IMG/VR virus record: IMGVR_UViG_3300045996_002337
Span: 186,001-250,000 of that record
Strand: one strand, 5' to 3'
Length of the DNA: 64,000 nucleotides
The number at the start of each line of letters is the position of its first letter. Positions within the stretch are counted from its first letter, which is position 1. Shown piece after piece: positions 2,813 through 60,749 of the stretch. The notes under the pieces are model-generated. The model did not search any database and was not told where the DNA came from. It saw only the letters and a list, made by a program, of their open reading frames with translations. The position numbers and the translations under genes are program-made.

Positions 2813-3934
2813 TCACCTTCTTACGACGGCGCTAATGGCATAGTGCACCTTTTCAGCTGCAGCATCCCATGTAGAGCGCTTCACGATTTCATTTGACAGC
2901 GCTAGTCGGTGCGCCTGCTCAACCTCAGACTCCTTCAGCAGGTGCTCAATGTGCTTGATGAATTCTTCATGGCTGTAGCCAATTTCAACAACACTGCCAT
3001 AAAGTTCAACAACGTCATGCACCGCGGTTGACACGATGGGCTTCTCTGCGGCCATGTACTCAAGGGTCTTCGTTGGTGAAATGAACTTCGTGCTGTCATT
3101 AAGGGCGAAAGGCAGCATGCAGACGTCCCACCCTTGAACGATCATTGGTAGAATGGCGTAATCTTTTTGGCCCAGCCAATGAATGTTTTCACGTTGCGGC
3201 AGAATTGCAGGATCGATCTTAACAACCGGACCAACCATTACAACATGCCAACGTGGATTGGCATCGGCAATTTTTGCCACAAGCTCAACATCAAGTCGTT
3301 CGTCGATAACGCCGAAGAAGCCAATCCGTGGGTGTGGAATTTTTGTTTCTTCTTCAAACAGTGTCTCAGCTTCAATTTCACGAGCTCGAGATGGTGAATA
3401 GTGCTTAGAATCAACGCATGATGGAAGACAAATGGTGTCTGGACGAATTTTTGATTTTGCTGCCCACAATGATGGACCGCCGGCGATGACCACATCCGCG
3501 GTTTGAAGTAGATCGGCCTCACGTTCCTTTAGCTCCTTGGGCGCGTTGTGGAACATCGTCAGTTCGTCCATTACGTCGAACACGACAAAATCTGGCGAGA
3601 ATAGATTATGAAGCGGGTAGGCCTGTGGGGTGTAGAACCAAATACCATAGGAGTCATCACCGCAGCCATTTGAAAAGAACCATTCGCGCAGCAATGGGCC
3701 AAATGAAATCATGTGCTGATTGGTGAAACCCCACCCTTCCTCATTTGTGTGTGGCACTACAACGGTGATGTTAGCTGCCACCTTTGCAGTGTAGAGGTGA
3801 GGTGCGCCAGTCGTAAACATCGGCTCCTCAACGAAGACGATGTTATAGTGCTCAGCCAGCCTCGATAGAAGGTGCTGTGGACGTTGAAAAACGAAGTTCC
3901 AGCGTAGGTGGGAGAATACTAGGAGGGTTTTCAT
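2813..3934 (-). CDS. GT-B glycosyltransferase (family 4-like)
   Basis: FSHLRWNFVFQRPQHLLSRLA N-terminus, IGFFGVIDERLD, PTKTLEYMAAEKPIVST. Confidence 0.9.
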   Translation of the reverse strand: MKTLLVFSHLRWNFVFQRPQHLLSRLAEHYNIVFVEEPMFTTGAPHLYTAKVAANITVVVPHTNEEGWGFTNQHMISFGPLLREWFFSNGCGDDSYGIWFYTPQAYPLHNLFSPDFVVFDVMDELTMFHNAPKELKEREADLLQTADVVIAGGPSLWAAKSKIRPDTICLPSCVDSKHYSPSRAREIEAETLFEEETKIPHPRIGFFGVIDERLDVELVAKIADANPRWHVVMVGPVVKIDPAILPQRENIHWLGQKDYAILPMIVQGWDVCMLPFALNDSTKFISPTKTLEYMAAEKPIVSTAVHDVVELYGSVVEIGYSHEEFIKHIEHLLKESEVEQAHRLALSNEIVKRSTWDAAAEKVHYAISAVVRR

Positions 3935-8451: not shown

Positions 8452-9126
8452 TTATTTATGGGGCCAGAGAAGATCAAAGTTTCCCGCCATCACCCTATCA
8501 CAGGCCGCGGATCGCCCAGTTCGATGATCCTTTACAAGATTATCTTGAAAGCGGTACGTTCGAATTTTATCGCCACGTTCGCCACTTCCAACCTGTGCCT
8601 TGCGATCAGCTGCCAGCTCCAGGAGCTGACCATTTCGGGCAACGGAATTCAGGCGCACCATTATTTCTGTTTTGGCTTCGTTCAGAGAATTTTCACGTGA
8701 GCGGCACTGCGCTGTCACAATTTCACTTGATGGAATGTGCGTGATGCGACACGAATTTTGGTGCTTGTTTCTATGCTGGCCTCCAGCACCCGTGCCAGAG
8801 TACCATTCTATCTTGAAGTCACGCTCATTGAAGGTGACTCGTTTGATCTCTCCTGGATGGATGATTGCCACCGTGACGGTCGAGGAGTGTACCCGTCCCC
8901 GTCTCTCGGTTGGCGGTATGCGCTGAATCCGGTGTCCGCCTGGCTCGTTGTTGAGCTCTGACAGATCCTCGCCGGTTACCTCAATGCTGAGTTCGCGAGA
9001 ATCAATCAGGCGGGTAGTTCAGCCGACGCGTTGCGCGTGGGCGATGTAGGCTTTAGCCAGGTCCTTCACGAACAGCTTGCTGTCCTCTCCGCCTTCGGCG
9101 GCTCGAATCTCAATAATGCGTTTCAT
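8452..9126 (-). CDS. RF1-like class-I peptide chain release factor (224 aa) containing an in-frame TGA at codon 36 (9019-9021)
   Basis: SD GGAG and ATG at 9126: MKRIIEIRAAEGGEDSKLFVKDLAKAYIAHAQRVG-TGA-TTRL...GGHRIQRIPPTERRGRVHSSTVTV...GAGGQHRNK...RSRENS...IRTYRF. PxT and GGQ motifs are intact and in one frame. Confidence 0.85.
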
Positions 9127-9752: not shown

Positions 9753-9879
9753 TGGTGGTGGCGGAAGGAATCGAACCTCCCCTGGCCGTTTATGAGTCGG
9801 ATAACCAATTACGGACGGTTGAGCTAACAACGAAAGGTGCAATCGATGTTTACCGTGCTGTCCACTACACTACGCCACC
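9753..9879 (-). ncRNA. tRNA/Y-RNA hybrid: tRNA acceptor, D and T arms with CCA, and a ~50-nt Ro60-helix-like domain in place of the anticodon arm
   Basis: GGTGGCG/CGCCACC-A-CCA, D arm, T loop TTCGATT; insert contains TCG-TTG[TTAGCT]CAA-C-CG and GGTTATCC/GATTGC, shared with the Y-like family. Confidence 0.6.
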
Positions 9880-12346: not shown

Positions 12347-12366
12347 ACAGAAATTTATGTCTTAAG

Positions 12367-12448
12367 CTCCACGATCTGGGCTCGAACCAGACTTGATCTT
12401 TCGATCGCGGATTAACAGTCCGCTGCCACACCCGGCGGCTCTCGTGGA
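12367..12448 (-). tRNA. tRNA-Asn(GTT)-like with long variable arm, no encoded CCA, flanks extend the acceptor stem
   Basis: GCGGA-CTGTTAA-TCCGC; GATC-GAAA-GATC variable arm; CTTAAGCTCCACGA/TCGTGGAGCTTAAG 14-bp stem. Confidence 0.65.
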
Positions 12449-12476
12449 GCTTAAGACACTTACATAATGTTCTTTG

Positions 12477-12548
12477 CTCCAGAGGCAGGGATCGAACCTA
12501 CGACGGACGCATTAACAGTGCGCTGCTCTACCGCTGAGCTACACTGGA
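12477..12548 (-). tRNA. tRNA-Asn(GTT), no encoded CCA
   Basis: Canonical cloverleaf; leader TGTTCTTTGC pairs with trailer GCAAAGAACA. Confidence 0.85.
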
Positions 12549-12984: not shown

Positions 12985-13078
12985 TGGCTCCCTCGGACGG
13001 ACTCGAACCGCCATATTACGCCTTACGGCCTTTACGTCTGATTAACAGTCAGGTCTCTTACCATTAGAGTACAAGGGA
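12985..13078 (-). tRNA. tRNA-Asn(GTT) with 24-nt variable region
   Basis: CT-GTT-AA; variable arm GCC-GTAA-GGC; G73; CCA. Confidence 0.8.
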
Positions 13079-16188: not shown

Positions 16189-16586
16189 TTCAAAATCTCC
16201 ATTTGTTTCTCACGCTCACGTAGACCATCACAAGCTTTGATGGCCCAGTCGACATCCCAGTTAGTAATGGCTTTAAGGGTGGCGCCTTGAACCAACAGCT
16301 TTTTCACACACGGGTCTTTTGCGGCTTTCGCAATACTTTCGTTGGTTGCGGCTCGGGTCTCATGGAAAATGACGAAGTAGAGAAGCGCTGTAATAAGCGG
16401 TGGAAGCCAGATTCCCATCCATGCAATCATGAATTTGCGGATGGCTTCGACAAGAGAGCCAAGACCCCATACGAGTCGATGCGCTCGTCGGGCCCACAGG
16501 CGACGGGTTGCTGTACTTTTCACCGTGAGAATCCTTCTTCTAGAGCCATGACCAGCTTTGGAATGTCGGCGGCATAGAAGCCGCAC
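16185..16586 (-). CDS. hypothetical membrane protein (paralog of 15805..16188)
   Basis: Same ATRRLWARRA and Cys motifs. Confidence 0.6.
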   Translation of the reverse strand: MRLLCRRHSKAGHGSRRRILTVKSTATRRLWARRAHRLVWGLGSLVEAIRKFMIAWMGIWLPPLITALLYFVIFHETRAATNESIAKAAKDPCVKKLLVQGATLKAITNWDVDWAIKACDGLREREKQMEILK

Positions 16587-17317
16587 GAGTTCAACGTATT
16601 GATTTCTACAACCTTCATTCCATCTGGCGTGTCACAGACGTCGATCACAAATGCGGCGTGAGGCTGCCATTCAGCAATTCTATCACGCGCGTAGTCGAAG
16701 AAACACTGGTCAACCTCCGAAGAGTAGATGACCTGGTCGCCGCGCTTGTAGAGCGAAGCCGTGATGATGTCACCGTGTACGACCCAGAAACGGTATTCGG
16801 AGTAGATCACCTTCGGTTTGGTGACTTGAACGAGGGTGTTCTTCGTCAAGGAGTTGCCGTAGTCCTCTTCAAGGACGCAGACCTTTCGCTTCCAGGTGTA
16901 GAATTCTTCCTTCTCGAAAACCTTACCGGCGAATACCTTGCTGTCCTCAATTGGTCGAATGAAGGCGAGATGCTCCTCACCACGTTCAAAGAACGGAAAC
17001 ACCGCGTCCTCGAAACGGCTGACCTTCGAGTCGAAGTTAAGCATATGCTCGCCCCACTTCTCGCGCTGCATTTCAAAGTTGCACGGCTCGAGGTCGAACA
17101 CGCCAGGTGTCCAAATCTTGCGCTTCGCATAGTGCCGGAGGGAGTACGACCCCATGCAGATCACGTTCTTGTGGTCAAGCTCGGGCTCTGGCATGAGGTC
17201 ACCAACGAATGGAACGACCTTGTGAATGGAGTAGGGCAAGCCAAGCCGCTCGAGGGTGTCGAGTAGGGTCTGGTAGGCGGCCTCATTGAAGAGGTTGTTC
17301 TGTAGAATCCAATGCAT
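16520..17317 (-). CDS. ATP-grasp protein, R2K/DUF4343-like
   Basis: FIRP...SKVFAG, SEYRFWVVHG, AFVIDV...VVEINTLNSCGFY. Confidence 0.8.
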   Translation of the reverse strand: MHWILQNNLFNEAAYQTLLDTLERLGLPYSIHKVVPFVGDLMPEPELDHKNVICMGSYSLRHYAKRKIWTPGVFDLEPCNFEMQREKWGEHMLNFDSKVSRFEDAVFPFFERGEEHLAFIRPIEDSKVFAGKVFEKEEFYTWKRKVCVLEEDYGNSLTKNTLVQVTKPKVIYSEYRFWVVHGDIITASLYKRGDQVIYSSEVDQCFFDYARDRIAEWQPHAAFVIDVCDTPDGMKVVEINTLNSCGFYAADIPKLVMALEEGFSR

Positions 17318-17318
17318 G

Positions 17319-17666
17319 TCAGTGCAGCGGCGGGCTGTCGTCGAGGTAGATGTTGTCGTCATCTTCAGCTGTCACTTCTATCAGGTGCAAGATGATCGTC
17401 TGAAGAACTTCAGCATCCAGTTCGTGGATGATTGGGGCCTCTTCTCCGTCACCACCTATTTCGTAGCGCATGAGGTCGCGTGACCCACCCTCAATCGGAT
17501 CCGCGATCACGATGTGCGAAAAGTTCATCAGCTGATAGGAGCTGTCAGGACCAACGGTGAACATGGGCGCGAGGTCCCCAAATTCACCGTCATCGTCGAC
17601 GGTAACTTGTGCGAAGCACTTTTCGCCTTCAACGTCAGGCACACGAAAAATGGCAAGCTTTGACAT
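17319..17666 (-). CDS. hypothetical acidic protein
   Basis: ORF; start MSKLAIF at 17666. Confidence 0.55.
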   Translation of the reverse strand: MSKLAIFRVPDVEGEKCFAQVTVDDDGEFGDLAPMFTVGPDSSYQLMNFSHIVIADPIEGGSRDLMRYEIGGDGEEAPIIHELDAEVLQTIILHLIEVTAEDDDNIYLDDSPPLH

Positions 17667-17950
17667 CACATCACCTCGAAAGCAAAGTTGAGCAGTTCTT
17701 GGGCACCCCATAGATCGAAGGGCACAGGGTCAGGGGTTTCACCGCAGCAGAACTCTTCGAGCTCGGCAGGTGAGAGCTTCGAGAGGGCAATGTCCACCGC
17801 CTTGATGTCAGCTTCAGCATAACGCTCCTCGACGAGATGCATCACGTGGTTAACAACCGATTCCTCGGTCACCCCACGGTAAATGACGCCACTGTCGTAG
17901 GCAATCTCAATGACGGCCTTGATGAGCGATGGGTACTTGTGTGGGATCAT
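17666..17950 (-). CDS. hypothetical protein
   Basis: 94-aa ORF coupled to both neighbours. Confidence 0.6.
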   Translation of the reverse strand: MIPHKYPSLIKAVIEIAYDSGVIYRGVTEESVVNHVMHLVEERYAEADIKAVDIALSKLSPAELEEFCCGETPDPVPFDLWGAQELLNFAFEVM

Positions 17951-19014
17951 TTTGCAAGCTCGTTTGGAATGAAGGCGCGGCCGGCCCGCCAGTGTTTTTG
18001 CGTTTGAACATGATTGGCGCGAACGAACTTTGCCACGCTCTTGCGAAAATCGCCGTAGCTAAACTCACCAGCAATCCGAACCACGTAACCTTCGTCCTTT
18101 TCAAAGTCTAGACTCTTCTCAATGTCACGAACAGTTTTCTCATCCCACATGCCATCATAAAGAACTGGGACAGGTGTTAGGCCGAGCAGCTCACACCAGA
18201 CGATGGTGTCATCCCACCTCAAGCAGCGGTTCTTTGCATCCCAAATGCTAAAGCACATGAAGTATGAAGGCAGGGCGGTGTAGTGAATCGAGTGCTCGGC
18301 CCAGAGGTTCTCGCCGCAAACACGCCAGCCTTCAGGAAGATTGAAGCAGACGTTCTCGATCAGGAACTTCTTGACCCAGGCCCGGTCTTCGCCACCACGG
18401 CTGTCAATCGAACGTGCGTGAATGTGACCATCGCTGTACGCGGTGGTGTTCTCACCGTCCATCTTCTTGGTGATGACTACACGGCGACCTTCAAACTGCG
18501 AGCAGTCCTTCAGGGCTTTGTCGTCGTCTTGTTTTCCAGGAGACCAGGGGAGGTGGAACGTCCGCTCGTACTTGACGTACGAGGTAAACAGATCCAACGC
18601 TCCACCCGCGGCCAGAACTTTCTGTACGGACTCGTCAAAGAAGAGCTCGCCCTTGGCGCGGCGACCGTCAGCAAGTACTGGGTTTCCCCATTTGTCGTAC
18701 TGATGGTCAGGGTAGAAGTGCGGAGGAACCACGATCTTCGTGATGCCTGCTGCTTGACGCACGTCCTCGACCGAGTAGAACGTTTTCTCGCAGAGAAGAT
18801 GATGCAGCTCGCACACGGTCGCGCCGTTCTCGAGATAGTAGCCACCATCTGGCCACAGCCGCCGCTCGAGAATGTGATGCGCGTCGAGCTTGCCCTCAGG
18901 GGTTTGCGCTGCAGTGATTCCGCAGAAAACGCACTTGTGACCATCTCGAAGGAACACACCTTCGCGGAAGTTGTCTCGAGTAAGTAGTTTGGGCTCTGCC
19001 ATGTTATTCTCCAT
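17947..19014 (-). CDS. HNH-domain / RNA ligase fusion protein
   Basis: N-terminal CVFC...DAHHI...NGATVC-x-x-HH; C-terminal ligase motifs KMDGEN, CGEN, EGYVVR, K-F-V-R. Confidence 0.85.
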   Translation of the reverse strand: MENNMAEPKLLTRDNFREGVFLRDGHKCVFCGITAAQTPEGKLDAHHILERRLWPDGGYYLENGATVCELHHLLCEKTFYSVEDVRQAAGITKIVVPPHFYPDHQYDKWGNPVLADGRRAKGELFFDESVQKVLAAGGALDLFTSYVKYERTFHLPWSPGKQDDDKALKDCSQFEGRRVVITKKMDGENTTAYSDGHIHARSIDSRGGEDRAWVKKFLIENVCFNLPEGWRVCGENLWAEHSIHYTALPSYFMCFSIWDAKNRCLRWDDTIVWCELLGLTPVPVLYDGMWDEKTVRDIEKSLDFEKDEGYVVRIAGEFSYGDFRKSVAKFVRANHVQTQKHWRAGRAFIPNELAK

Positions 19015-54940: not shown

Positions 54941-55129
54941 TCACCCGTTGACGATCTTTGTTACGACATCTTGATCATCAACAAAGACCTTTAGTCTGGA
55001 AGGTTTTACACTGGCGTCAGTGTAATAGCCAGGGCGGAGCACCACAACAGACCCATGAAAGTTGGCTCTGATCAGAGGCAGAACCACAATAAGGGGGCGG
55101 CCGATGTATTGAGTGAAGGCTGGAGTCAT
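54941..55129 (-). CDS. peptidase-inhibitor I78-like small protein
   Basis: LRPGYYT-D...RL-x-VFVD...VV-x-KI-x-x-G. Confidence 0.55.
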   Translation of the reverse strand: MTPAFTQYIGRPLIVVLPLIRANFHGSVVVLRPGYYTDASVKPSRLKVFVDDQDVVTKIVNG

Positions 55130-55166
55130 AAATCTCTCCTAAATTTGAAATGCCATTAAACATGTC

Positions 55167-55243
55167 TGGTGCCCAAGGTCGGACTCGAACCGACAGATTG
55201 CAGGTTTTGAATCTGCTGCCTATACCAATTCGGCTACTTGGGC
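55167..55243 (-). tRNA. tRNA-Leu(CAA) with short variable arm
   Basis: TT-CAA-AA, A73, CCA. Confidence 0.75.
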
Positions 55244-55390
55244 AGTATTTAATTGACACCTTTCGTTTCGTAGCCAAATTACGAGAACCTTCTCCAGTCA
55301 AGGGAGCGTTTGTCGTAAAATCAAACCACGGTCTCGAAGAAGCAAGGTGCGTTCCGAGGCGACTAACTCTCAGTAGCACGTGTCAAAACT

Positions 55391-55484
55391 TGGCGGTGAC
55401 GATGGGATTCGAACCCATGGAGCCCGATGAAGGACCCTCTTCCTTAGCAGGGAAGTGCAATAAACCTGGCTCTGCCACGTCACC
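55391..55484 (-). tRNA. tRNA-Ser(GCT)
   Basis: CT-GCT-AA, long variable arm, G73, CCA. Confidence 0.9.
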
Positions 55485-55696
55485 ATAAATTCTTGCGCGC
55501 TGGTATTCGTTGCAGAACGACTTGTAGCTTTCACCTACCAGCAAGATCCAGTTGCACACCGTCAGCCACTGGCAATCTCCACCTCCGCACTCTTAAGGGC
55601 CGCTGAGGTCTCCCTAGCCTTCTTAACGAATCAGACCAAAACGTTCCTTTAGAGTCAAGGACAACTACCACATAGACGCTGTGGCCTCGCGAATTC

Positions 55697-55783
55697 TGGA
55701 GGAGAATAACGGAATCGAACCGTCACCTGTAAACAAATGGGCTGGCTTTCGAAACCAGTTACGCGCCATGCGTCCTATTCTCC
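55697..55783 (-). tRNA. tRNA-Ser(CGA)
   Basis: TT-CGA-AA, long variable arm, CCA; 5' part overlaps the NADAR stop. Confidence 0.8.
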
Positions 55784-56211
55784 ATGACTAACTTCCAGAG
55801 ATCAGCTCGAATTTCCATCAGCATGATCCCCAGCCTGTTCTTTCCAACACCTCGGCAAACTCCCCAGTACGTGTCGTTCCAGTGGTTAGTTTCCTCGATG
55901 TAAGCATCTCCTGTTGCCAAGAGCTGCGTCATAAACGGTTCCTGTGAGAACTTCTGGATCAAGAGGTCTCTCATGACGTCCTCTTTGATCTGTTCCCAAT
56001 CTTCTCGAATCTGAATCACGCGACCAAACTTCTTTGCCTCTGCGCCAGAAGCCGCCCTTGCGATCTTCTTTCTAAGCTCAATGTCAAGCGTCTTTGCCGC
56101 CTGGTATGCGTGTTCAGTGGATGGAAACGCGACGCCTTCAAACTGGACCCATACGGACCAAAAGTTTGACAGGAACCTATGGTCTCCGCTAAATCCCTTG
56201 ATCTCGTCCAT
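55759..56211 (-). CDS. NADAR (YbiA/DUF1768) family protein
   Basis: FLSNF...STEHAYQAAK...KFSQ...LLATG...E-x-x-x-W-x-D-x-YWG...GKNRLG-x-x-LME-x-R. Confidence 0.92.
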   Translation of the reverse strand: MDEIKGFSGDHRFLSNFWSVWVQFEGVAFPSTEHAYQAAKTLDIELRKKIARAASGAEAKKFGRVIQIREDWEQIKEDVMRDLLIQKFSQEPFMTQLLATGDAYIEETNHWNDTYWGVCRGVGKNRLGIMLMEIRADLWKLVMENRTHGA

Positions 56212-56224
56212 CTTAGTTTCCTAT

Positions 56225-56332
56225 TGGCTCCCCAACCTGGGCTCGAACCAGGGACCTGCGGATTAACTAGAACACCCGATAAACCAGATGTTCGGTGTCA
56301 GTCCGACGCTCTACCAACTGAGCTATTGGGGA
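56225..56332 (-). tRNA. tRNA-Asn(GTT) interrupted by a 32-nt insertion in the anticodon loop
   Basis: Canonical Asn body; loop reads CTG[ACACCGAACATCTGGTTTATCGGGTGTTCTAG]TTAA; removing 32 nt restores CT-GTT-AA. Confidence 0.8.
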
Positions 56333-56338
56333 ATTGAT

Positions 56339-56665
56339 TTACCAGCTAACGGTAACGTTTGCGATAAAACCGTTGCGGCTGTTCACCGTTACTGTAAAGC
56401 CATCATTCTGCATGAGAACAACCGCGGCTTGCAGCTGATCGTCAATTTCTTGTTCGGTTAGGTGAAAGATCCCCAGCGCCCCGATTGAAACGTTGACGTT
56501 TAACGTCTTCGTAAACAGCCCAGCTTCAGCAGCATTTGAAACGGCGTTCTCGACGCTTCCATAGAAGCTGTTCATGACTTCAGCCTTCGTTGCGTCCTTA
56601 GCTTCAGGCGTGGTCAGAAGTGCAAGCTGTTCAACAGCGCGGGCATTAGCATCACTTGCTAGCAT
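56339..56665 (-). CDS. hypothetical protein
   Basis: 108-aa ORF, SD AAGGA. Confidence 0.65.
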   Translation of the reverse strand: MLASDANARAVEQLALLTTPEAKDATKAEVMNSFYGSVENAVSNAAEAGLFTKTLNVNVSIGALGIFHLTEQEIDDQLQAAVVLMQNDGFTVTVNSRNGFIANVTVSW

Positions 56666-56679
56666 AACATTTCCTTAAT

Positions 56680-56763
56680 TGGTGCGTACGGGGAGACTCG
56701 AACTCCCAATCCTTTCGGCGCTGGCTTCTAAGACCAGAGTGTATACCATTCCACCACGTACGC
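56680..56763 (-). tRNA. tRNA-Leu(TAG)
   Basis: CT-TAG-AA, variable arm, CCA. Confidence 0.9.
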
Positions 56764-56865
56764 ATTGTTTGGGTGACTAAAAGCCGGTGGGGTATCCGAG
56801 GTCAGGCTTCAACTCCATCCTCTTCCCATCCTCCGTTTACTTTCCTTACTTTCAGTCAGTTGTTT

Positions 56866-56939
56866 TGGTTCCTCTAGGTGGAATTGAACCACCGTCAGCC
56901 CCTTATAAGGAGGCCGCTCTACCATTGAGCTATAGAGGC
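56866..56939 (-). tRNA. tRNA-Ile(TAT)
   Basis: CT-TAT-AA; G1.A72 mismatch; CCA. Confidence 0.8.
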
Positions 56940-56940
56940 A

Positions 56941-57273
56941 TCAGATGGCAAAGCACTCAGCATGAGCTTTCACGTGAGTGAGAACATCACCACGGGCTGC
57001 AAAAACCTTTGTGCTATCATCAAACATCTTGGCATGAACGACCACTTTGCGGGTATTTCCAATGGTCACACCGCGAAACGTCTTGCCTGTAACCGTGATC
57101 TCGCACTCAATGCTGTCGTTGAAATTGTTCTTGATAACGCAGCGACCAGCCGACTTATTCCACAGACACCCTGGAGTAAGCTCAACGAGATCACGTTGTC
57201 GCTCTTGCCCATGTGAGGCAAGTGACATGAAAAGTGCAAATGCACCGATAAAATAAGCAGCAAGTTTCTTCAT
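56941..57273 (-). CDS. hypothetical exported protein
   Basis: Signal peptide, 4 Cys. Confidence 0.65.
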   Translation of the reverse strand: MKKLAAYFIGAFALFMSLASHGQERQRDLVELTPGCLWNKSAGRCVIKNNFNDSIECEITVTGKTFRGVTIGNTRKVVVHAKMFDDSTKVFAARGDVLTHVKAHAECFAI

Positions 57274-57481
57274 GTCAACATCTCCAACGTGGGGTTATTT
57301 GATTTCGTATTTGTCCGTTTTTCGGTATTAGGGTTCAGCGGTAACCCAGGGAATTCTTGATGGGCCAGGGTAAGCATCCATCATGTCCTACTTCGCCCGT
57401 TGCAGCTCCGGCTTTCGCGAGATACTGACGTGTCTAAGGACTTTGCGTCTGTCGGTGCACCGACAGGGTCGCCAAATTAAC

Positions 57482-57618
57482 AAAGCATAGAAACAACAAA
57501 AGGCGCTATCGGGAATTCCTGCCCCTGGACCACCTGCAGGATGCCACGAATCGAACGGGCTTGGGTTTATTTCCAATAATAGTAGATAACCGACAACAAA
57601 CGGTTGATTCTATGCTTT
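57482..57618 (-). ncRNA. Y-RNA-like RNA with degenerate T-loop module
   Basis: AAAGCATAGAA terminal stem; CAA-C-CG / TTG-TTG helix; GTTATC/GATAGC; TTCGATT hairpin. Confidence 0.55.
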
Positions 57619-57864
57619 GCCAACATTGGTGCGGGTGGAGGGACTTGAACCCTCAAAGCCGAAGCTGTCGGATTTTAAGTCCGATGTGGTTACCGATTTC
57701 ACCACACCCGCGCGTGTGATCCCCTCTGTTATCTCTAAAAGAGCGTCGAAACATTTTCCACAATTCATTGCACAGTTCGTTTTCATCATGATCTCTTCCG
57801 TCGTAAGAGGGAGAAGATCACGAATTGTCTGTTCAGAAACTCCAGCACAGATACAAACGATCAT
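57610..57864 (-). CDS. bfd: Bfd-like [2Fe-2S] ferredoxin whose frame runs through tRNA-Leu(TAA)
   Basis: MIVCIC...CGKC motif; own TATAAT promoter at ~57870. Confidence 0.75.
   Translation of the reverse strand: MIVCICAGVSEQTIRDLLPLTTEEIMMKTNCAMNCGKCFDALLEITEGITRAGVVKSVTTSDLKSDSFGFEGSSPSTRTNVGKA
57627..57711 (-). tRNA. tRNA-Leu(TAA)
   Basis: CT-TAA-AA, variable arm, CCA. Confidence 0.9.
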
Positions 57865-57903
57865 GAATCATTATAACACTAGTGGGAGCTAAGTGGAACC
57901 TAT

Positions 57904-58077
57904 TTACCGAAGAGCGATCATGCGCGAACGAAGACGTTCTTCATTGTCATACTCCGAGATCCAAAATTCAATCTCCTGTGGAGATTGCGGGTTCTTCGAA
58001 GCGACGAAACGTTCGAGCGCCGTCATTTGACGGGTGGAGAAAGCCTGCTTAAGCCAAGCGAAAATACGTGAGATCAT
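57904..58077 (-). CDS. small protein, DUF3563-like (57 aa, not in ORF track)
   Basis: MISRIFAWLKQAF...LERFVASKNPQSPQEIEFWISEYD. Confidence 0.5.
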   Translation of the reverse strand: MISRIFAWLKQAFSTRQMTALERFVASKNPQSPQEIEFWISEYDNEERLRSRMIALR

Positions 58078-60631: not shown

Positions 60632-60749
60632 TGGTGGGGACTCGTGGGCTCGAACCACGGACCTACTAGATGTCTACTTTCTGCATGGACAATGGGCGCC
60701 GTTCCATGCAGTTTCGCTCTAATCGCTCTACCAACTGAGCTAAGTCCCC
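60632..60749 (-). ncRNA. tRNA-like RNA with a hairpin inserted in the anticodon loop
   Basis: Near-consensus acceptor, D and T arms plus CCA; loop holds a CTGCATGGA/TCCATGCAG hairpin; no clean 7-nt anticodon loop. Confidence 0.65.

Follow-up and report, generated by a model that had tools for sequence, protein, structure and literature searches.

Interrupted tRNA genes are of several described types. Group I introns, found in the anticodon loops of bacterial and phage tRNA genes (for example cyanobacterial tRNA-Leu UAA), are more than 200 nt long with a P3-P9 catalytic core, a U.G pair at the 5' splice site and a terminal G, while group II introns have a six-domain structure of hundreds of nucleotides that includes domain V. 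Short, non-self-splicing tRNA introns are regarded as a hallmark of archaea and eukaryotes, where the splice sites lie in two 3-nt bulges separated by a 4-bp helix (the bulge-helix-bulge, or BHB, motif) and are processed by the EndA/Sen endonuclease, with ligation by RtcB or by Trl1 together with Tpt1. Their only phage precedent is the conserved 'enigmatic' introns reported in the tRNA genes of Lak megaphages (PMC6784885), which are unexplained. Two further systems are relevant: the repair of anticodon-loop breaks by phage T4, in which PrrC cuts tRNA-Lys, Pnkp heals the ends and Rnl1 seals them, and the YrlA-type Y RNAs of bacteria and phages, which contain tRNA-like domains and are partners of Ro60 (PMC4201824).

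Here we describe a tRNA-Asn gene of a giant phage that is split within its anticodon by a 32-nt hairpin. The same kind of insert, at the same position, recurs in tRNA-Asn and tRNA-Lys genes of otherwise unrelated phage contigs, and it is probably a new type of short tRNA intron, although the machinery for its removal is unknown. The DNA analyzed (the window) is a 64,000-nt stretch, bases 186001-250000 of a 349,660-bp IMG/VR phage record (IMGVR_UViG_3300045996_002337) estimated to be 97% complete. The genome has about 55 tRNA genes, nearly all on the - strand and interspersed with small ORFs. No cultured phage is close, and the best ligase match among cultured phages is less than 40% identical.

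An interrupted tRNA-Asn gene

The interrupted gene and its surroundings are listed in the table below. It has a 7-bp acceptor stem, canonical D and T arms, a 5-bp anticodon stem with a single U.C mismatch at 27:43, a U1-A72 first pair, G73 and an encoded CCA, but there are 39 nt rather than 7 between the two strands of the anticodon stem. The Rfam tRNA model (RF00005) matches it over its full length (1-71) with 55.0 bits (E 2e-10 in 3 kb; gathering score 29) and a 34-nt local insertion in the loop. Default ARAGORN misses the locus, but with introns allowed it calls tRNA-Asn(GTT) with a 32-nt intron at 34/35, and when the 32 nt are deleted in silico the resulting 76-nt sequence is called tRNA-Asn(GTT) by default ARAGORN. 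The two halves match annotated tRNA-Asn at 95-98%, and one normal 76-nt tRNA-Asn aligns to both halves; the criteria of sequence for a tRNA-Asn are thus satisfied, although aminoacylation was not assayed.

Table. Features of the interrupted tRNA-Asn locus and of related loci within the 64,000-nt window.
Feature	Coordinates	Strand	Observations
Interrupted tRNA-Asn(GUU) gene	56225..56332	-	108 nt including the encoded CCA; ARAGORN intron call i(35,32)
5' exon	56299..56332	-	tRNA positions 1-34 (ends C32 U33 G34)
Intervening sequence	56267..56298	-	32 nt: 5-nt linker ACACC, 9-bp hairpin with a 6-nt loop, 3-nt linker UAG
Insert hairpin (P2)	56270..56293	-	GAACAUCUG / CGGGUGUUC; 94% of cells paired among the six family members
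Helix P1	56264..56300	-	U33 G34 a1 c2 paired with g32 U35 U36 A37; encloses the insert, sequesters the anticodon and contains both junctions
3' exon	56225..56266	-	tRNA positions 35-76 (U35 U36 A37 A38 ... G73 CCA); up to 97.7% identical (95.3% in most records) to regions annotated tRNA-Asn in GenBank records
NADAR-domain protein	55759..56211	-	150 aa; starts 13 nt downstream of the tRNA; Pfam NADAR 83 bits
ORF with no family assigned	56339..56665	-	108 aa; ends 7 nt upstream of the tRNA; no Pfam or PHROG match; no relative found in viral contigs
Rnl2-type ATP-dependent RNA ligase	17947..19014	-	355 aa; candidate sealing enzyme; Pfam RNA_ligase 95 bits
R2K ATP-grasp protein	16520-17362		next to the Rnl2-type ligase
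Uninterrupted tRNA-Asn(GUU)	12476..12548	-	73 nt; 68% identical to the spliced form

The minimum-energy fold keeps the cloverleaf and extends the anticodon arm, such that the stem is followed by a C32.A38 mismatch, the 4-bp helix P1, a 3x2 internal loop and the hairpin P2, in which GAACAUC/GGUGUUC is extended to 9 bp. The insert occurs only once in the 349,660-bp genome and is not a repeat element. It is present without any difference in a 242-nt contig of a public DNA run, which may however be the source sample, and in other joined contigs of those runs bacterial tRNA-Asn genes align to both halves and skip exactly the 32 bases. The insert is therefore not an assembly accident, and the observation made in the earlier note, namely a canonical tRNA body with a 32-nt hairpin insert at 33/34 or 34/35 whose precise removal restores CU-GUU-AA, is correct. 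The ambiguity in position is real for this sequence alone, because a G is repeated at both junctions. Promoter and terminator scans were uninformative, and we note that the same window contains two more interrupted tRNA-like genes; a pattern search for homologues of the second interrupted tRNA gave no hits.

The loop can alternatively be read, in this sequence alone, as a tRNA-Val(GAC) with a canonical 37/38 intron (CUGACA, 32 nt, A) spliced by an archaeal or eukaryal-type system, with GAC paired to GUU of the 'intron' as in classical anticodon-intron helices. This is very unlikely, as the same reading of the homologues described below gives GAU, GAC or UAC on Asn- or Lys-type bodies, the discriminator, first pair and 3' half are those of tRNA-Asn, and there is neither a BHB motif nor an endonuclease homologue.

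Homologues in other phage contigs

Whether the same insert is found in relatives had been named in the earlier note as a check, with lack of conservation, together with detection of only the unspliced form, counting against its reading. An exact-pattern search for the gene in viral contigs gave no hits, but pattern scans that fixed only parts of the tRNA body identified five homologues in uncultivated phage contigs from independent metagenomes: L089 and L092 (both Asn) and L093 (a Lys-like body with A73) from IMG/VR, L128 (Asn) from a second IMG/VR scan, and L125 (Asn) from an 8.3-kb metagenome contig. L125 also keeps the gene order seen here, with a NADAR gene directly downstream. In L089 and L125 the bases at the 3' end of the insert are not G, and only the junction CUG|...|UUAA restores GUU, placing the insert between positions 34 and 35. 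A further contig, L095, supports this junction independently, although its insert is of a different class; it contains an intact tRNA-Lys(UUU) and a second copy of the same body with 21 extra bases exactly between U34 and U35.

All six members share one architecture: base 34, a 5-nt linker (A-Y-R-Y-N, the first base always A), a hairpin of 7-11 bp that is variable in sequence, a 3-nt linker, and U35, with inserts of 29-33 nt. The base at position 34 tracks the identity of the tRNA body, being a G in all five Asn-like bodies (U1-A72, G73) and a U in L093, the one Lys-like family member, as well as in the Lys-like bodies of L095 and L091, which carry other insert classes. The junction sequences are otherwise not conserved; the 5' junction is N|A, the last intron base is G, C, A, A, G and G across the family, and the 3' junction is G|U in only three of six members, with A|U or C|U in the others. 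The earlier note pointed out that 34/35 is where colicin-E5-type nucleases cut; the idea that such a cut is involved here thus has no sequence support.

Alignment of the six sequences shows that 96% of pair cells are standard pairs, as compared to 32-46% when the partners are slid by 1-3 columns. Fifteen pairs change on both sides, including seven of nine in the insert hairpin and six of seven in the acceptor stem, and none of 500 shuffles reaches the observed values. RNAalifold predicts the same consensus structure without being given it, and G.U pairs in the hairpin exist only on the tRNA-sense strand. The P1 pair between intron base 2 and the last intron base is C-G in three members, U-A in two, and broken in one. 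With six sequences these numbers are modest, but the contigs are otherwise nearly unrelated, with only seven protein families shared by three or more of the six, and the family therefore spans distant phages.

The family appears to be confined to phage contigs and to NUU anticodons, as far as these strict patterns can see; the patterns fixed parts of the body and, in some scans, loop bases 32-33 and 36-38. A pattern that left the anticodon free recovered only the Asn and Lys members already identified among phages, its other hits being giant-virus tRNA-Ile(UAU) genes with classical 37/38 introns, and a scan of one genome for each of 185,579 prokaryote species found only assembly-type tRNA duplications. 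Phages in GenBank have no insert-bearing homologue. A covariance model of the interrupted anticodon arm finds exactly one copy per record, which together with the single copy in this genome excludes a repeat or mobile element.

Coverage of asparagine by the interrupted gene

The best argument that the gene is functional comes from G001, the 108.7-kb record (61% complete) that contains L089. G001 has ordinary tRNA genes for 19 amino acids, and its only tRNA-Asn gene is the interrupted one, which argues that the insert is removed from the RNA. The record G005 and the L125 contig also show no other Asn gene in the sequence available, whereas the phage studied here and the record G004 do have others; this phage has three other tRNA-Asn genes, such that the interrupted one is dispensable in principle.

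That redundancy, and the failure of default tRNA finders to call the locus, would be compatible with a decaying pseudogene disrupted by a chance or mobile palindromic DNA insertion. We regard this as improbable, because the exons are flawless, the same architecture recurs in six otherwise unrelated contigs with compensatory changes and strand-specific G.U pairs, the insert is single-copy in every genome searched, and it interrupts the only Asn gene of G001.

Candidate processing enzymes

The insert is neither a group I nor a group II intron: it is 32 nt long, it has no Rfam intron or ribozyme match at E up to 1 (Intron_gpI included), and it has no conserved terminal G. Nor does it have a BHB motif, as both junctions lie inside P1 in the minimum-energy and consensus folds, and enumeration of the BHB central helix gives at most three of four pairs, and these only by melting the anticodon stem and the hairpin. 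The splicing endonuclease domain (PF01974) has no match at E up to 1 in six frames of the 97%-complete phage genome; the host is unknown, and bacteria are not known to have this enzyme. RtcB (PF01139), put forward in the earlier note as a possible ligase to assay, is absent from the phage and from nine related records, although host RtcB was not examined, and there is no RNase III domain in the phage. The ORFs flanking the interrupted genes in four phages have no shared family, and a 288-aa ORF next to the gene in G005 looks like a free-standing PD-(D/E)XK homing endonuclease with no counterpart elsewhere. No endonuclease candidate was therefore found, and the geometry of the junctions, which are 1 bp apart on opposite strands of P1, fits neither RNase III nor BHB enzymes and matches no known splicing nuclease.

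The absence of a protein endonuclease, the constant linker lengths (5 and 3 nt), the A at the first intron base and the A-Y-R-Y pattern of the 5' linker could be taken to suggest a very small self-excising ribozyme built from the 5' linker, the internal loop and P1. However, 32 nt with about five conserved bases is far below any known self-cleaving or self-splicing core, two cleavages plus a ligation would be required, and there is no omega-G at the 3' junction; this seems very unlikely.

The phage does encode a rich RNA-repair set. This includes a T4 Rnl1-type ligase with the Rnl1 C-terminal domain (91 bits; genome 123.2-124.4 kb), two Rnl2-type ligases, of which one is in the window and the other, a PHA02142-OB/Rnl ligase, lies beside an HNH nuclease with a calcineurin-type phosphoesterase, a DNA ligase and an RlaP nucleotidyltransferase nearby, two P-loop AAA_33 kinases, and a Tpt1/KptA RNA 2'-phosphotransferase (158 bits). 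NAMPT, a Thg1-like protein and a Ro60/TROVE protein are also present. Of the components of a heal-and-seal pathway, a 2H cyclic phosphodiesterase is represented only by a sub-threshold hit of 16.9 bits, with the calcineurin-type enzyme present instead, and since action on this RNA was not assayed the inventory does not settle whether such a pathway operates here. In G002, the record with an interrupted tRNA-Lys, a polynucleotide-kinase-like gene and a phosphoesterase gene lie directly downstream of the tRNA.

All five viral records with a family member have an ATP-dependent RNA ligase, including fragments of 19 and 38 kb, as compared to 25 of 50 control NADAR-containing phage records; the L125 contig was not tested. 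This enrichment is suggestive only, resting on five records and an unmatched control set, and Rnl1 alone is not clearly enriched (3 of 5 against 13 of 50). Three of the seven protein families shared by at least three of the six carriers are RNA ligases. Tpt1 was not found in the other, mostly fragmentary, records, and G007, a complete 72.8-kb phage, has a hairpin-interrupted tRNA-Val but no Rnl1, Rnl2 or RtcB, indicating either that phage ligases are not always required or that such genes are not always spliced.

The main rival to splicing is that the RNA is a tRNA mimic with an extended anticodon arm that is never spliced and acts as a decoy, as an inhibitor (for example of host anticodon nucleases that attack tRNA-Asn or tRNA-Lys) or as a Y-RNA-like partner of the phage Ro60. 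This reading gains some weight from the Ro60 gene and from the known tRNA-like Y RNAs of bacteria and phages. The Ro60 gene lies about 4 kb before the window, about 60 kb from the interrupted tRNA, and G004 also encodes Ro60; another tRNA-like gene in the window shares a 21-nt motif with the region upstream of the Ro60 gene, the anticodon is sequestered in P1, and no splicing endonuclease was found. However, Ro60 is absent from three of the five family-containing records (G001, which is 61% complete, G002 and G005), the insert lacks the motif found next to the Ro60 gene, and the region upstream of that gene does not fold better than shuffled sequences (z = 0.24). The Rfam YrlA and Y_RNA models do not match positions 55000-58000 of the window at E up to 1, the base at position 34 matches the body identity in all members, and without splicing G001 would lack a tRNA-Asn in an otherwise complete set of 20. 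We therefore consider this alternative doubtful, although it is the strongest of those examined.

A model for intron removal

We favor the interpretation, with a probability of roughly 0.55, that this is a functional tRNA-Asn(GUU) gene interrupted by a structured intervening sequence belonging to a previously undescribed family of short hairpin introns in tRNA-Asn and tRNA-Lys genes of uncultivated large phages. In this view the first two intron bases and the last pair with the anticodon region of the precursor to form P1, with the hairpin stacked above it, and the insert is most likely removed from the RNA by two endonucleolytic cuts at positions fixed relative to the anticodon stem, one after nucleotide 34 and one four nucleotides before the 3' strand of the stem. 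The endonuclease could be phage- or host-encoded, and the halves would be healed and sealed by the phage's own Rnl1/Rnl2 ligases, P-loop kinases and phosphoesterase, with Tpt1 removing a junction 2'-phosphate. Sealing within the anticodon loop is the reaction that T4 Rnl1 performs on broken tRNA-Lys, and the presence of Tpt1 suggests that at least some ligations in this phage leave a 2'-phosphate, as in fungal and plant tRNA splicing.

The sequence comparisons establish the gene, the insert, its position and its conserved, covarying structure, but removal at the RNA level is an inference from these, and both the identity of the enzymes and the reason for keeping the intron are speculation. Detection of the spliced form was another check that the earlier note proposed for its reading; searches of public runs found only DNA metagenomes with the phage at very low depth and no RNA run with the locus, and the reads that were aligned gave no information on transcripts. 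The interpretation offered in that note, protein-dependent splicing in a phage or activation by nuclease cutting and ligation, is thus partly supported, in that protein-mediated removal gains indirect support from the conserved family at one fixed position, the tRNA set of G001 and the repair enzymes of this phage, while the involvement of RtcB and of a colicin-E5-type cut does not, and its statement that bacterial and phage tRNA introns are self-splicing elements of hundreds of nucleotides overlooks the Lak introns.

Asn and Lys tRNAs are targets of anticodon nucleases, and one possible reason for retention of the intron is that a precursor with a hidden anticodon is immune to these host enzymes; a protected precursor or a timed activation is plausible, but untested. 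The restriction to Asn and Lys tRNAs links the family to the tRNA arms race between phages and defense systems, which has been reviewed (PMC10264068, PMC7824862). A more far-reaching possibility, which we consider rather unlikely, is that large phages of bacteria run a protein-catalyzed tRNA splicing pathway of their own, in which a ruler-type endonuclease cuts the hairpin intron out of tRNA-Asn and tRNA-Lys precursors and the Rnl1/kinase/phosphoesterase/Tpt1 set rejoins the halves, the intron keeping the precursor invisible to host anticodon nucleases until the phage matures it. If true, this would be the first non-ribozyme tRNA splicing in the bacterial world. The family may also provide a natural substrate for the multiple phage RNA ligases and for the long-unexplained bacterial and phage Tpt1/KptA, and its compact, alignable form, fixed junction and geometry, and clear covariation make the question of how and why phage tRNA genes are interrupted directly testable with a 108-nt substrate. 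We also note that because standard bacterial tRNA finders miss these genes, phage tRNA complements are under-counted.

Comparison with known systems

The nearest precedent is in the Lak megaphages, whose introns are likewise intervening sequences in the anticodon loop of phage tRNA genes, conserved between phage genomes, with an unknown removal mechanism. The Lak example that we examined is about 93 nt, is predicted just after the anticodon near 37/38, and contains a T-arm-like or tRNA-like element, whereas the inserts described here are shorter plain hairpins at 34/35 with fixed linkers, and are restricted to Asn and Lys genes; targeted full-text literature searches found no description of such a family. 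Longer T-arm-containing inserts identified in our scans, in L090 and L091, look more like the Lak type. What is new here is thus the size, position and defined geometry, while the existence of unexplained introns in phage tRNA genes was already known.

The archaeal and eukaryal protein-spliced introns are similarly short and ribozyme-free, lie in the anticodon loop and pair the anticodon with intron bases, and the phage has Tpt1 and an Rnl1-type ligase as in the fungal and plant heal-and-seal route. They differ in having a BHB motif, a 37/38 position and an EndA/Sen endonuclease, with RtcB in some cases, none of which was found here, and the setting of this gene is bacterial and viral; genuine archaeal introns (tRNA-Tyr and tRNA-Lys) and the giant-virus tRNA-Ile(UAU) introns recovered by the same scans look different. 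Group I introns also interrupt bacterial-type tRNA genes within the anticodon loop, but are far larger and have the catalytic core, 5' U.G pair and terminal G described above. With YrlA-type Y RNAs there is a shared tRNA-like form with a long helix in place of the anticodon arm, in a genome that encodes Ro60, but YrlA is permuted, with a closed acceptor and its ends in the Ro-binding stem, while this RNA has an open acceptor with CCA. Finally, as in the T4 pathway, the phage encodes an Rnl1-type ligase with the tRNA-specific C-terminal domain, a kinase and a phosphoesterase, and the joint to be made lies in the anticodon loop of a Lys- or Asn-type tRNA; T4, however, repairs a single host-inflicted cut at 33/34 in an uninterrupted tRNA-Lys, whereas here two cuts by an unknown nuclease and removal of 32 nt at 34/35 would be needed.

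Additional interrupted and tRNA-like genes

Examination of the surrounding sequence and of the related contigs reveals further atypical tRNA genes, whose positions are collected together with those of nearby genes in the table below. The first is a second interrupted tRNA gene in the same window, which the Rfam tRNA model scores at 48.5 bits, but which has 49 nt where the 7-nt anticodon loop should be, together with a 9-bp hairpin (fold z = -3.7). A pattern scan found no homologue of this gene, and no simple excision gives a standard loop; we note, however, that the 3′ end of the loop reads UAGACAU, which resembles a Val(GAC) loop except for the presence of an A at position 33.

Positions of the additional tRNA, tRNA-like and protein-coding features
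Location	Strand	Feature
Window 60632-60749	-	Second interrupted tRNA gene
Window 9753-9879	-	tRNA-like gene with an insert of about 50 nt
Genome 183200-183220	-	Other copy of the insert motif, about 250 nt upstream of the Ro60 ORF
L196:7254-8954		Ro60 ORF of the same phage
Window 12366-12448	-	tRNA-Asn(GUU) gene, 83 nt
Window 12985-13078	-	tRNA-Asn(GUU) gene, 94 nt
G004:19892		tRNA-Asn gene of relative G004, 88 nt
Genome 258611-258769 (outside the window; L135:611-769); window 8452-8871		Two adjacent tRNAs with anticodon CUA and a small RF-1-domain protein
L095:64-139 and L095:~3560-3657		Two copies of one tRNA-Lys(UUU) body
L090:21-144		tRNA (Asn) with insert at junction 35/36
L091:7555-7680 (=L094)		Lys-like tRNA with insert
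L030:15-108		tRNA-Val with UUCG hairpin insert
L138/L142, L139, L140/L141, L004:3302-3565		tRNA-like genes with replaced anticodon arm
L159:14700-15811 (G002:34700-35811)		Interrupted tRNA-Lys with kinase-like and phosphoesterase genes
Genome 140.5-141.0 kb, 178.0-178.8 kb, 181.3-183.0 kb, 261.1-262.5 kb, 277-288 kb (outside the window)		RNA-repair and NAD gene set
L165:10238-11104 and L165:6970-8811 (G005)		288-aa ORF and intein-bearing AAA protein

A further tRNA-like gene has canonical acceptor, D and T arms and CCA, and is seen by ARAGORN with the intron option but not by Rfam. Its insert precedes a CUCAUAA loop, and shares invariant motifs (TCG, ACCG, and TG-TTATCC) with tRNA-like genes in the sequences L004 (two copies) and L077. 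The only other copy of the ACCG...TTGGTTATCC motif in this genome lies just upstream of the phage's Ro60/TROVE gene. It may be a Ro60-binding (Y-RNA-like) module, although the region upstream of Ro60 does not fold better than shuffles.

The phage has four tRNA-Asn genes, three of which are atypical. In addition to the gene interrupted within its anticodon, two tRNA-Asn(GUU) genes have long, partly paired variable arms, which is unusual for a class I tRNA; a similar Asn gene is present in G004, a relative. The genome also contains two adjacent tRNAs with anticodon CUA (amber suppressors, labelled Pyl by ARAGORN), and the small RF-1-domain protein is ArfB-like. Stop-codon recoding or ribosome rescue is possible, and we note that G002, the record carrying the interrupted tRNA-Lys, also has a tRNA(CUA).

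Gene neighborhoods and RNA-repair functions

In G002, the interrupted tRNA-Lys is followed within 21 nt by genes encoding a 136-aa polynucleotide-kinase-like P-loop protein and a 190-aa phosphoesterase (phrog_547, 159 bits), which together look like a split Pnkp-like healing module. In the phage described here, a dense RNA-repair and NAD set lies outside the window, and comprises Tpt1/KptA beside a cpYpsA SLOG protein, a Thg1-like protein, Ro60/TROVE, NAMPT, a PHA02142-OB RNA ligase next to an HNH nuclease, a calcineurin-type phosphoesterase, and RlaP. Next to the interrupted tRNA-Asn of G005, another related record, is a 288-aa ORF with zinc-finger-like CxxC motifs and a weak PD-(D/E)XK/resolvase-like C-terminus, which is probably a free-standing homing endonuclease, and an AAA protein nearby carries an intein.

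Other insert classes and comparison with known introns

The phage contig L095 contains two copies of one tRNA-Lys(UUU) body, one of which is intact, whereas the other has a 21-nt hairpin insert exactly between U34 and U35. Because the linkers are 2 and 5 nt, this is a different insert class from the core family; L120 (Asn, junction 33/34) has the same 2/5 geometry. Yet another type of insert is present in L030, where a tRNA-Val carries a perfect 18-nt UUCG hairpin at 33/34 or 34/35, in a complete 72.8-kb phage that has no Rnl1, Rnl2 or RtcB. There are also tRNA-like genes (in L138/L142, L139, L140/L141, and L004) whose anticodon arm is replaced by an outer stem enclosing one or two hairpins; the nature of these genes is not resolved, and the inner loop often reads N-A-NNN-A-N, with an A at position 33.

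Some of these inserts, as well as other genes recovered in the same scans, can be compared with tRNA introns that have been described previously. The phage tRNAs L090 and L091 carry inserts of 49–50 nt containing a T-arm-like hairpin, and these are reminiscent of the Lak 'tRNA within a tRNA'. The scans also picked up classical introns, namely archaeal-type tRNA-Tyr(GUA) and tRNA-Lys genes with 37/38 introns in metagenome contigs (L096, L102, L104, L109, L113-L119, and L126), and tRNA-Ile(UAU) genes with 37/38 introns in giant-virus MAGs (L166-L195); these serve as contrasts, and do not share the 34/35 architecture.
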